From Pseudomonas aeruginosa PAO1 (GTDB lineage Bacteria > Pseudomonadota > Gammaproteobacteria > Pseudomonadales > Pseudomonadaceae), in NCBI RefSeq assembly GCF_000006765.1, contig NC_002516.2: DNA of 64,000 nt; one strand, given 5' to 3'. Below the pieces are notes generated by a model. The model had not been told where the DNA came from. It made no database searches and saw nothing but the letters and a program-made list of their open reading frames with translations. The position numbers were made by a program, and so were the translations under genes. Below, piece after piece: positions 29,254 through 52,675 of the stretch. Within the stretch, counting starts at the first letter, position 1. Every line of letters begins with the position of its first letter.

Positions 29254-29258
<5 letters not shown>

Positions 29259-29440
29259 GGCGAATAACCACTCGCGGTTATCCGCCGGGCCATGCTCCGC
29301 AGAAGCGGCGGATAGCGCCGCTGGCGCTGTTCGCCCTACCTCACGACTCCCACCGGTAGGGCGAATAACCGCTCGCGGTCATCCGCCGGGCCATGCTCCG
29401 CAGAAGCGGCGGATAGCGCCGCTGGCGCTATTCGCCCTAC
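29254..29440. repeat. Array of four GTAG-family REP palindromes (two tandem inverted REP pairs)
   Basis: Unit GGTAGGGCGAATAACC..GGTTATCCGCC-spacer-GGCGGATAGCGCC..GGCGCT(G/A)TTCGCCCTAC at 29254-29340 and 29355-29440 (101 bp period). Confidence 0.9.
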
Positions 29441-40332: not shown

Positions 40333-40366
40333 GGTAGGGCGCATAACGCCAACGGCGTTATCCGCC
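40333..40366 (+). repeat. GTAG-family REP
   Basis: GGTAGGGCGCATAACGCCAACGGCGTTATCCGCC. Confidence 0.88.
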
Positions 40367-40501
40367 GCAGCGGCACTCCCGGCCGATAGCGGAGCCGCCC
40401 TCACCCCAACTCTCTCCCTGAAGAGAGAGGGGATTCTCCGTACAAGCGTCGAATTCGCTGTCTCCAACGCCGCCGACGAACCCGAACCGTAGGGCGCCAG
40501 C

Positions 40502-43515: not shown

Positions 43516-43549
43516 GGTAGGGCGGATAACGCCAACGGCGTTATCTGCC
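43516..43549 (+). repeat. GTAG-family REP
   Basis: GGTAGGGCGGATAACGCCAACGGCGTTATCTGCC. Confidence 0.88.
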
Positions 43550-49994: not shown

Positions 49995-50458
49995 GCGCGA
50001 ACCTGCACGGCCTGGAGTTCCCCGACGGGCTGTTCTACGCCCCGGACTACAACCTGTGGTTGCGCGAGGAAGTCGACGGCAGCCTGACCCTGGGCCTGAG
50101 CGCCTACGGCTGCGCGCTGTATGGCGAAATCTTCGCCTTCACCCCCAAGCGCGACGGCTGGCACATCGAACGCGACCGCAGCTTCGGCGTGGTCGAGTTC
50201 GCCAAGGCTGCCTCCTCGGCCCGCAGCCCGTTGGCCGGGACCCTGCTGGCGAGCAACCCGGCGGTGGTCAAGCGCCCGGCGCTGATCAACCGGGATTGCT
50301 ACGGCGAGGGCTGGATGGTACGGCTGCAACCGGACGACTGGGCCTCGGCGCGGAGCGCGTTTCTCCAGGGAGACGCGGCGCGGGAGGCATTCGCCGAGCG
50401 CATGCGCCTGGATGGGTTCGATCCGCAGCATCCAGGGGTGCAGGCACTGGACTTCTGA
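49991..50458 (+). CDS. Glycine-cleavage H-like lipoyl-carrier protein
   Basis: GVVEFAKAAS (lipoyl Lys), SPLAG and LINRDCYGEGW motifs. Confidence 0.87.
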   Translation: MSANLHGLEFPDGLFYAPDYNLWLREEVDGSLTLGLSAYGCALYGEIFAFTPKRDGWHIERDRSFGVVEFAKAASSARSPLAGTLLASNPAVVKRPALINRDCYGEGWMVRLQPDDWASARSAFLQGDAAREAFAERMRLDGFDPQHPGVQALDF

Positions 50459-50493
50459 GACTCCCGGGTTTTACCCGCACCCCGCTCGCGGAA

Positions 50494-50520
50494 GGCGGAT
50501 AACGCCGCTGGCGTTATTCG
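50494..50520 (-). repeat. 3' portion of a REP split by the IS insertion
   Basis: Minus strand CGAATAACGCCAGCGGCGTTATCCGCC; the missing 5' part GGTAGGGC lies at 51899-51892. Confidence 0.9.
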
Positions 50521-50577
50521 TATATGGACTCCTCCCGGTTTGCCAGTGTTTGTCTTGATTTCAAACCTGTGTACGAC

Positions 50578-50729
50578 TGCATCCGTATATCCGGCTTCAT
50601 GGAGTGGTGTTGCAACTCCCGAGCCCTGATGAAATGCGCGCCTGCATACCTGATCGCCCTAACGGCTTTGCTTCACTGCAGCAGGGAGCCCACGTATAAA
50701 CCAGGTTTCATGCAGGCCGGTTCGACCGG
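50578..50729 (-). ncRNA. Predicted bridge/seek guide RNA core in the IS 3' non-coding end (exact ends unknown)
   Basis: 5' hairpin plus two stem-internal-loop modules carrying target matches (TTATACG, TAGGGCGA) and donor matches (CATTTCAT, ATATAC). Confidence 0.75.
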
Positions 50730-50795
50730 TTCGTCATCATTGTCATTCACTGAGCAATCGTGGTGGATGTTTCAACTACGGTGTGGCAGGAACGC

Positions 50796-51812
50796 TCAAC
50801 CGGGCCGGTAGCATGTCTCCCGGCTGAGTAAAGCCCAAAGGATCCGGGCATTCTTGTTGGCCAGGGCAACGGCGACGACATTGGCAGGACGCCGTTGCAG
50901 CAGACCTTGCAGCCAGCGGCTGCGGGCATCGGTCTTGTTGGCGCAACAGCGCACGACTGCACGGGCGCCATGGATGAGCAAGGTCCGCAAGTAGGTATCG
51001 CCGCGCTTGCTGATGTTGCCCAAGCGCTGCTGCCCGCCCGTGGAGTGCTGCCGTGGCACCAGGCCCAGCCAGGCCGCAAACTGGCGGCCCGTGCGGAATT
51101 GCCGTGCATCACCGGCGGATGCCGCCACCGCGCTGGCGCTGATCGGGCCGATGCCTTCCACCGCCAGCAGGCGCTGGATGCGGGCATCGCCACGTACGTG
51201 AGCCTGAATCTGTCGCTCCAGTCGAGCGATGCGCGCCTCCAGCGTCTGCAATTCATCTTTCAATTCACGCAACAGCTCGCCCATCGGGGCCGGCAAGGGC
51301 GCCGGCTCGGTAGCCATGACCGTTTCGAGCAAGGCCATCGTCGCCGCTCGCCCACGTCGAGTCGCGATCAGCCCGAACTCACCCAGCAAGCCACGCACCT
51401 CATTGCACAACGCCGTGCGGGCCCGCACTAGACGACTGCGCACCCGATGCATCGACTGCACGGCCTGCTGCTCTGCGCTCTTCACCGGGACATAGCGCAT
51501 GCTCGGACGACTGGCGGCTTCGCAGATCGCCTCGGCGTCGTGTGCATCGTGCTTGTCACCCTTGACGTAGGGTTTTACGAACTGCGGTGCGATCAGGCGT
51601 ACCGTGTGGCCCAGCTCCCGCAACTCGCGCGCCCAGTAGTGCGCACTGCCGCAGGCCTCCATCGCCACCAGGCACGGCGGCAGTTGGCGAAAGAAATCCC
51701 GCACCTGTGCCCGCTTGAGTTGGCGACGACATACCACATGCTCGTGACGATCAACGCCGTGCACCTGGAATACTTGTTTTGCCAGATCCAGACCAATGCG
51801 ACTAAGGTTCAT
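50796..51812 (-). CDS. IS110/IS1111-family DEDD transposase/recombinase (338 aa)
   Basis: GLDLAK (D), AMEACG (E), KHDAHDA (D,D), GIGPISA HhH and GLVPRQHSTGG (catalytic Ser loop); purine-rich RBS before ATG 51812. Confidence 0.96.
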   Translation of the reverse strand: MNLSRIGLDLAKQVFQVHGVDRHEHVVCRRQLKRAQVRDFFRQLPPCLVAMEACGSAHYWARELRELGHTVRLIAPQFVKPYVKGDKHDAHDAEAICEAASRPSMRYVPVKSAEQQAVQSMHRVRSRLVRARTALCNEVRGLLGEFGLIATRRGRAATMALLETVMATEPAPLPAPMGELLRELKDELQTLEARIARLERQIQAHVRGDARIQRLLAVEGIGPISASAVAASAGDARQFRTGRQFAAWLGLVPRQHSTGGQQRLGNISKRGDTYLRTLLIHGARAVVRCCANKTDARSRWLQGLLQRRPANVVAVALANKNARILWALLSRETCYRPG

Positions 51813-51946
51813 GCTGACTCCCCCTCCGGGACTTGTGGCTGCACCATTAGTCTGGCGCTTGACGCCGTAGGAGGGAGGAGTCCATTTCATTGCCCTACCC
51901 CAGCTCTCCATCGCCGCCAATCTCCCGCATATCCCCGGAGTCCGCC

Positions 51947-52675
51947 ATGTCCTCACCCCAACCGCCCCGCTTCGACGGCCAACGCTGGAGCAACGCCGAC
52001 GACGACCGCATCGAGGTGCTGCCTGCCGACCCCGCCTGGCCACAACACTTCGCCGCCGAAGCCGAGGCCATCCGCACGGCGCTGGCGCTGCCCGGGCTGG
52101 GCATCGAGCATGTCGGCAGCACCGCGGTGCCCGGGCTCGACGCCAAGCCGATCATCGACATCCTCCTGCTGCCGCCGCCCGGCCACGATCCGCAGCGGCT
52201 GGTAGCCCCGCTGGAGGGCCTCGGCTACCAGTTCTGGCGCGAGAACCCGAACACCCAGCGGATGTTCTTCGTCAAAGGCATGCCGCCCTTCGGCCATGGC
52301 CGCACCCACCATGTCCATGTCATGCCCCTGGCCCAGGCCGACCGCTACCTGCTGTTCCGCGACTGGCTGCGCAACCACCCCGACGACGCCCGCCTCTACG
52401 CCGAAACCAAGCACGCCCTGGCCCGCCGCTACCCCACCGACCGCGAGGCCTATACCCGTGGCAAGGACGAGGTCGTCGCAAGGATTCTCGGCCGGGCGCT
52501 GGCGGCGACGCGGCACCCAATGATACAGAGTGGCCTGGTAAGGGGAGAACGCGAAATGCACGCCAGGGAACTGCGTGAAACGCTGGTCGCCGGCGCGGAA
52601 TCGACGCCAGGCGGCCCCGCCGATACAGCCTATTTCGAGTCGCTGCGCAGCCGGGTAAGCAAGCCCCAGGACTGA
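51947..52675 (+). CDS. GrpB-family protein with a ParD-like C-terminal tail
   Basis: IEHVGSTAVPGLDAKPIIDI, HHVHV, FRDWLR and YTRGK motifs. Confidence 0.88.
   Translation: MSSPQPPRFDGQRWSNADDDRIEVLPADPAWPQHFAAEAEAIRTALALPGLGIEHVGSTAVPGLDAKPIIDILLLPPPGHDPQRLVAPLEGLGYQFWRENPNTQRMFFVKGMPPFGHGRTHHVHVMPLAQADRYLLFRDWLRNHPDDARLYAETKHALARRYPTDREAYTRGKDEVVARILGRALAATRHPMIQSGLVRGEREMHARELRETLVAGAESTPGGPADTAYFESLRSRVSKPQD

Follow-up and report, generated by a model that had tools for sequence, protein, structure and literature searches.

The ISPa11 guide RNA region of Pseudomonas aeruginosa PAO1 and its co-variation with REP targets and element ends

The locus carries a complete copy of ISPa11

The stretch of DNA analysed here (the window) comprises 64,000 nucleotides of the Pseudomonas aeruginosa PAO1 genome (NC_002516.2). 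Within it, at 50458-51950, an insertion sequence (IS) sits between two genes on the plus strand, starting 63 bp past the end of an ORF for a GCV_H-family protein (stop at 50458) and finishing roughly 55 bp short of the point where a GrpB-family gene probably begins. The IS is transcribed in the direction opposite to both neighbours, which may affect expression of the downstream gene. The element occupies 1372 bp on the minus strand and encodes a transposase of 338 residues that matches the Pfam families DEDD_Tnp_IS110 (PF01548, 2e-16) and Transposase_20 (PF02371, 9.2e-25) and scores 365.7 bits against the NCBIfam model NF033542, 'IS110 family RNA-guided transposase' (cut-off 140). An N-terminal DEDD/RuvC-like domain is followed by the C-terminal PF02371 domain, the layout required of the IS1111 group, and the motif GL-P----S(T)G that defines the C-terminal domain in this group (PMC11187229) is present in the translation as GLVPRQHSTG. 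All 338 residues are identical to those of the ISPa11 protein given in Supplementary file 6 of PMC11187229, and a protein cluster 99% identical to the transposase carries the name 'IS110-like element ISPa11 family transposase [Pseudomonas aeruginosa]'. The host element is thus ISPa11.

The ends agree with this assignment. The subterminal inverted repeats (sTIRs) form a perfect repeat of 13 bp, within the 11-13 bp of the IS1111 group, and lie inside asymmetric terminal extensions, 7 bp long at the left end and 3 bp at the right, as is usual for these elements; with the extensions CAATGAA and ATA assigned in this way, the remaining flanks join to an intact REP repeat. Non-coding DNA is distributed unevenly: 275 nt follow the stop codon before the IS ends, as against 80 nt 5′ of the start codon, giving the long non-coding region downstream of tnp that is required in the IS1111 group. 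An exact-protein look-up found six copies in P. aeruginosa CP047067.1, all identical base for base to the IS in the window, and one of these occupies the same site between the GrpB-family and GCV_H-family genes. A megablast search of the IS against a plasmid collection found no copy. A further P. aeruginosa assembly with the element at this site, GCA_013415045.1 (L090:600-700), reads GTAGGGC-G-AATGAAATGG at the left junction, one G more than the window and than locus L086, which could be an assembly error or a junction variant at the core.

Table 1. Features of the ISPa11 locus in the window
Feature	Position	Strand	Evidence or remark
Complete ISPa11 copy	50521..51892	-	Ends from sTIR positions and the 7-bp/3-bp extension rule; 0 differences from the CP047067.1 copies
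tnp gene, 338-aa DEDD transposase	50796..51812 including stop codon (ORF 51812-50799)	-	Pfam, NCBIfam, identity to ISPa11 Tnp
Left half of interrupted REP target, GTAGGG	51893..51898	-	Flank reading; matches CP047067.1 sites
Left 7-bp terminal extension, CAATGAA	51886..51892	-	Positions 3-7 plus ATG of the sTIR are the complement of the 5′ donor segment
Left sTIR, ATGGACTCCTCCC	51873..51885	-	Exact 13-bp inverted repeat with 50524-50536
Long seekRNA (172 nt)	50586..50757	-	Published boundaries mapped by arithmetic from stop codon 50798-50796
Short 'peak' seekRNA (96 nt)	~50635..50730	-	Published end (161 = 50635); start 66 (50730) inferred
Small hairpin CCGGT-CGA-ACCGG (CCGGTCGAACCGG)	50717..50729	-	Direct reading and fold
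Target module	50640..50717	-	8-bp closing stem, second short stem, internal loop, apical hairpin
Target-module closing stem	50717-50710 with 50647-50640	-	Includes CCTGCAT 50716-50710 / ATGCAGG 50647-50641
5′ target guide, TTATACG	50693..50699	-	Complement of top-strand CGAATAA (core and right target), one mismatch at the variable REP base
Apical hairpin of target module	GGCT 50690-50687 with AGCC 50667-50664	-	90.8% paired at base among relatives
3′ target guide, TAGGGCGA	50654..50661	-	Identical to top strand: left target, core C, GA
5′ donor segment, CATTTCAT	50629..50636	-	Complement of left-end ATGAAATG
Donor stem-loop	50593..50625	-	4-bp GGCT/AGCC (50625-50622 with 50596-50593) around inner hairpin
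Inner donor hairpin GGAGT/ACTCC	50619-50615 with 50605-50601	-	Inside donor GGCT/AGCC stem
3′ donor segment, ATATAC	50585..50590	-	Right end (AT of sTIR plus ATA) and first left-end base, i.e. the circle junction
Right sTIR, GGGAGGAGTCCAT	50524..50536	-	Pairs with 51873-51885
Right 3-bp terminal extension, ATA	50521..50523	-	Co-changes with 3′ donor segment among relatives
Right half of interrupted REP target, CGAATAACGCCAGCGGCGTTATCCGCC	50494..50520	-	Flank reading; joined flanks like intact REPs

ISPa11 interrupts a REP repeat

The IS is flanked by GTAGGG (51898-51893) and by CGAATAAC reading from 50520 downward, and the joined flanks give GTAGGGCGAATAACGCCAGCGGCGTTATCCGCC, a REP like the intact ones at 29256, 29357, 40335 and 43518. 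All seven insertion sites, that of the window and the six in CP047067.1, read GTAGGG^CG(A/C/G)ATAAC, where ^ marks the insertion point. Insertion at these seven sites is site-specific and without target duplication, and the sole base common to both junctions is one C. The ISPa11 target listed in Table 1 of a 2026 review (PMC13604230) is GTAGGGCGaATAACCGC, with insertion between GG and CG and the variable base in lower case.

The intact REPs of the window comprise a BIME-like cluster of four in alternating orientation (29256-29439), a pair (40335-40369) and a single repeat (43518-43532). Those at 29256, 29357, 40335 and 43518 read TAGGGCG(A/C/G)ATAAC and are thus unoccupied sites that fit both target guides of ISPa11.

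Guide motifs and modules downstream of tnp

In the non-coding region downstream of the transposase gene, a sequence-only reading of this DNA had claimed a small hairpin, a set of stems and several guide motifs on the minus strand, and direct reading finds each of them exactly where it had been placed (Table 1). Its description of TAGGGCGA as identical to the REP top strand across the insertion point is confirmed by the flank sequence, and this segment would pair with the bottom strand of the target. The single mismatch of TTATACG had been attributed to the base that varies among REPs; this is borne out, the third base of CGAATAA, opposite the mismatch, being A, C or G both in the intact REPs of the window and at the six real ISPa11 sites. 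TTATACG lies 5′ of TAGGGCGA, the strand order expected of an IS1111 seekRNA, and both segments include the core C/G. Both the target module and the donor stem-loop appear, as claimed, in the minimum-free-energy fold, and we regard the region at 50578-50729, with high confidence, as the guide RNA gene of ISPa11, which belongs to the IS110 family and within it to the IS1111 group.

Measured against shuffled sequence, the folding energy is unremarkable (z = -0.6 and -1.1), and a scan of 50300-52100 against Rfam 15 (E <= 1) yielded no matching RNA family, only a chance match to COG2908 outside the element. When these 152 nt were shuffled 5000 times with their dinucleotide content preserved, 310 shuffles (6%) contained an 8-mer matching the 24-bp empty site, 232 (5%) one matching the 24-bp circle junction, and 8 (0.16%) both. 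Taken within the window alone, the guide matches are thus moderately improbable and suggestive, not decisive. It could be argued that they arose by chance in a region that is structured for some other purpose, for example to end transcription or to stabilise the tnp mRNA, and both the weak z-scores and the roughly 5% frequency of a single 8-mer match are compatible with such an explanation. The rarity of both matches together in the shuffles is not, the locus has no terminator-like site, an RNA bound to the transposase has been sequenced from this very region of ISPa11 (PMC11187229; bioRxiv 10.1101/2024.04.26.591405), and chance cannot produce the co-variation between guide and site seen among the 49 relatives described below; we consider it exceedingly improbable. 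The decisive support comes from these relatives.

Correspondence with the published ISPa11 RNA

RNA that co-purified with TnpPa11 has been analysed by small-RNA-seq, which revealed a predominant RNA of 96 nt and a longer form, both derived from downstream of tnp (PMC11187229). Each strand of the target is complementary to one segment of the RNA, and the segment for the top strand comes first (PMC11187229). According to Extended Data Fig. 6b of bioRxiv 10.1101/2024.04.26.591405, the long form (172 nt) extends from 39 to 210 nt past the stop codon and the short form (96 nt) ends 161 nt past it. The range printed for the short form, '86-161', gives only 76 nt rather than the stated 96 nt, and '86' looks like an error, so we took its start to be 66. 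These boundaries come from a figure legend and were published for ISPa11, and their placement in the PAO1 window is arithmetic rather than a measurement in the strain. The mapped intervals of both forms coincide with the modules of the sequence-only reading, the short form covering the small hairpin and the whole target module. The predicted LTG, RTG, LDG and RDG of ISPa11 have also been published (Durrant et al., 2024, PMC11208160, Extended Data Fig. 10c), and the predicted donor guides agree with the window in that the donor segments flank a stem-loop.

Neither a sigma-70-like promoter site nor an intrinsic terminator was found in the integrated ISPa11 copy. When the two IS ends are joined in silico, a -10 sequence, TACAAT, spans the junction, with CTGGCA upstream at a spacing of 18 nt. 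This amounts to 9 of 12 consensus matches and nothing beyond them, and would fit the junction promoters described for the IS110 family.

Conservation of the structure among relatives

To collect relatives, one genome per species was scanned with an alignment of 20 homologues, which gave 80 loci with transposases 53-80% identical. Ends and flanks could be placed in 67 of the 80 by means of sTIRs starting ATGG(A/T)C and finishing G(A/T)CCAT, and 49 non-redundant 3′ regions, with 47 distinct right flanks, were aligned using MAFFT. The aligned stretches were first located by a search for the 3′ donor segment, and their position was then fixed independently by the conserved GCCGGAT...G context in the MAFFT alignment. 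L049 and L062 were left out of the alignment; inspected by hand, both show the same donor segment in the same context. The 3′ non-coding regions of L011, L037, L038 and L042 are much longer than usual, at about 400-500 nt compared with about 260-300 nt. The additional DNA of L037 and L038, placed after the guide-RNA modules and before the right sTIR, may be an insertion or cargo inside the element.

In the 49 relatives, the closing stem of the target module shows changes on both sides at all eight of its pairs, with 93.8% of cells paired. For the structure as a whole, both-side changes occur at 21 of 38 pairs and 80.5% of cells are paired, compared with 30-39% when the partners are slid. The covariation score of 0.423 compares with 0.159 for shuffles, none of 500 reaching the observed value, and with 0.091 or less after shifting the partners by 1-3 columns. 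Taken together with its neighbours, the 4-bp donor stem is 98% paired, with both-side changes at two of its pairs, and the inner donor hairpin, while not alignable, folds in 47 of the 49 relatives from unrelated sequence. The small 5′ hairpin of the sequence-only reading is present at the locus, but in its 5-bp form it is a feature of the ISPa11 subgroup, the GGU/ACC core alone being found elsewhere: the core occurs in 46-48 of the 49 relatives and the outer C-G pair in only 12. Since the core is nearly invariant, it cannot be assessed by covariation.

Two helices offered by the single-sequence fold were rejected, namely a long-range helix between GATGAC (~50738-50733) and GTCGTAC (~50577-50570), 62.7% paired among the relatives, and a helix closing the donor module (GCAT/ATGC), 46.9% paired; both show almost no compensatory change. 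RNAalifold in addition joined the conserved GG in the small hairpin to CC in the 5′ donor segment. We take this pairing to be spurious, since the donor positions concerned change with the left end of the element and not with the invariant GG. Directly upstream of the target module, TGATGGC-AAACAGGTCnnACCGG (~50738-50717; alignment columns 30-55) is among the most conserved primary sequence in the alignment and likewise has hardly any compensatory changes; it resembles a site of protein contact or processing more than a helix. The 5′ end that we assign to the short seekRNA (50730) falls within this stretch.

The conserved structure also bears on how the short matches are read. Identity and complementarity to DNA strands cannot, in sequence alone, separate an RNA guide from a DNA-level site, and the matches might be copies of the target and of the IS ends that the transposase binds in double-stranded DNA. 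We think this very unlikely: the segments occupy the loops of helices that compensatory changes have preserved, a hallmark of a folded single strand, the material co-purifying with TnpPa11 is sensitive to RNase, and the non-coding region of ISEc11 works in trans as a transcript (PMC11187229).

Loop segments co-vary with the sites and ends of their own elements

The four loop segments of each of the 49 relatives were compared with the flanks and ends of the same element and with those of every other relative, using 5000 permutations for each segment. All four match their own sites or ends better than those of others (Table 2), and in no case was the observed own-site match reached by any of the 5000 permutations. 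Guide-target co-variation among homologues, which the sequence-only reading had named as a way to check its proposal, was thus found for both target segments.

Table 2. Match of the loop segments to own and other sites or ends in 49 relatives
Segment	Own, mean	Others, mean	Perfect match to own
5′ target guide (7 nt)	5.98	4.06	18/49
3′ target guide (8 nt)	6.73	4.26	5/49
5′ donor segment (5 nt)	4.78	3.84	39/49
3′ donor segment (4 nt)	3.96	3.12	47/49

The donor segments occur in eight distinct states each. Right extensions ATA, GTA, GCA, ACA and CTA, with C or T at the core, are mirrored in the RNA, as are the left extensions ..ATGAA, ..ATGGA, ..ATGGG, ..ATGGT and ..ATGAC, which appear as TTCAT, TCCAT, CCCAT, ACCAT and GTCAT, respectively. 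The part of the 5′ donor segment that is conserved among the relatives corresponds to its last 5 nt in ISPa11, TTCAT (50633-50629), and the 4 nt compared for the 3′ donor segment are its variable positions. In four relatives (L013, L028, L029 and L049) the right flank and the left end begin with different bases, and the RNA follows the left end, which implies that the 3′ donor segment reads the circle junction. The proposal that CATTTCAT and ATATAC match the left end and the circle junction, respectively, therefore holds both at the locus and, through co-variation, in its relatives.

A model for REP-directed insertion and the role of the donor half

In the proposed mechanism, a guide RNA is produced from the non-coding region downstream of the DEDD transposase gene, in the same direction as tnp, and binds the transposase. 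The internal loop of its first structured module holds two short guides. The 5′ guide would pair with top-strand bases immediately to the right of the insertion point and the 3′ guide with the bottom strand left of and across it, so that both jointly would select the GTAGGG^CGNATAAC edge of the P. aeruginosa REP repeats. One RNA would in this way hold target and donor together for strand exchange, and we infer that the donor segments pair with the circle junction during recombination. For ISPa11, others have demonstrated that the RNA co-purifies with the transposase, where it begins and ends, and which two of its segments match the target and in what order (PMC11187229; bioRxiv 10.1101/2024.04.26.591405), and the present analysis establishes the identity of the element, the structure with its compensatory changes and the co-variation of the four segments with their own target and ends. 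The observation made from sequence is confirmed and its interpretation supported, and the system is an already known one, the RNA of ISPa11 having been published in 2024. For an RNA-guided system aimed at REPs, the support comes from the identity with ISPa11, the published bound RNA and the co-variation; for the donor half of the 'bispecific' RNA that the sequence-only reading proposed, it comes from the co-variation and from a published prediction.

The first module, in the form of the 96-nt seekRNA, might be the only part that guides, with the transposase reading the IS ends through the sTIRs, which are long in IS1111 elements and could serve protein recognition; the downstream stem-loop would then be a precursor or processing remnant or a scaffold for transposase binding. 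Such a division of labour draws on experiments with ISEc11, in which a short, target-only RNA of 82 nt gave 42% transposition compared with about 15% for the long form, whose role is, according to the authors, yet to be established (PMC11187229). It does not account for the segments flanking the donor stem-loop, which co-change with the IS ends in eight states each, with perfect matches in 39 of 49 and 47 of 49 relatives and none of 5000 permutations reaching the observed match, and donor guides have been predicted for ISPa11 by Durrant et al. (PMC11208160). We consider a guide that reads the target alone, and with it the remnant or scaffold role of the stem-loop, rather unlikely. The co-variation speaks for selection on the donor segments to match the IS ends, and does not indicate the step at which they act. 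Because the segments track the right extension together with the first left-end base, and positions 3-7 of the left end, through at least eight states, we favour the reading that the donor half of the long seekRNA probably does act as a guide in IS1111-type elements, although a target-only RNA sufficed for ISEc11. If so, these elements would be fully bispecific like IS621, with donor guides that flank a stem-loop instead of lining an internal loop, and the short form might be used at another step or work alongside a second, long RNA.

RNA-guided DEDD recombinases attract wide interest as programmable tools for inserting DNA without double-strand breaks. The locus adds no new system, since ISPa11 itself was used in part of the published work, and its value is as a check, the published architecture having been correctly recovered from sequence alone. 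The comparison of relatives adds independent co-variation support for the donor-reading half predicted for IS1111-type elements.

Comparison with other IS110-family systems

The ISPa11 seekRNA of Siddiquee, Pong, Hall and Ataide (2024, Nat Commun, PMC11187229) belongs to the same element without any sequence difference: the transposase is identical, the REP target is GTAGGG^CGaATAAC, and the RNA lies downstream of tnp with the top-strand match first. That study credits the RNA with target recognition alone and does not assign a role to the long form; the sequence-only reading and the co-variation data add a probable donor-reading role for the second module.

The bridge RNA of IS621 (Durrant et al., 2024, Nature, PMC11208160, with a companion paper on its cryo-EM structure) is likewise a single RNA with target and donor parts that serves an IS110-family DEDD recombinase. 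As in ISPa11, each part has one segment per DNA strand, the two overlapping at the core. IS621 re-forms a promoter at the circle junction, where ISPa11 has the putative promoter given above as a consensus match. The two systems differ in that IS621 encodes its RNA within the left end, upstream of the gene and with the strand order reversed, whereas that of ISPa11 lies downstream; in that the IS621 donor guides line a simple internal loop while the ISPa11 donor segments flank a stem-loop; in the sTIRs, of 2-3 bp compared with 13 bp; and in the shared core, CT in IS621 and, by sequence, a single pyrimidine in ISPa11. ISPpu9 and ISPpu10 of Pseudomonas putida (PMC12288879, PMC1525189) also belong to the IS110 family, insert site-specifically into REPs and form circles. 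Unlike ISPa11, they are members of the IS110 group, without long sTIRs and with the bridge RNA upstream. ISPpu9 has a strong promoter of its own and no junction promoter, and its downstream Ssr9 RNA is not required for transposition.

Variation at the core and at the right extension

In the four relatives with differing bases at the two junctions (L013, L028, L029 and L049), the target guides disagree with one another at the core: the 3′ guide and the donor segment have C, and the 5′ guide ends in A. This final A would be paired with T, which is indeed the first base of the right flank. Among the relatives nearest to ISPa11 (L006, L007 and L011), the 5′ guide ends in a base that does not pair with the core C at all. 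Pairing with the top strand at the core thus seems dispensable. Finally, the RNA of one relative (L047:2309-2488) has GTA where its own right extension is ATA, while its near-twin, L053, has ATA in both; the mismatched element may be a decaying copy or may carry a recent change that is not yet matched.
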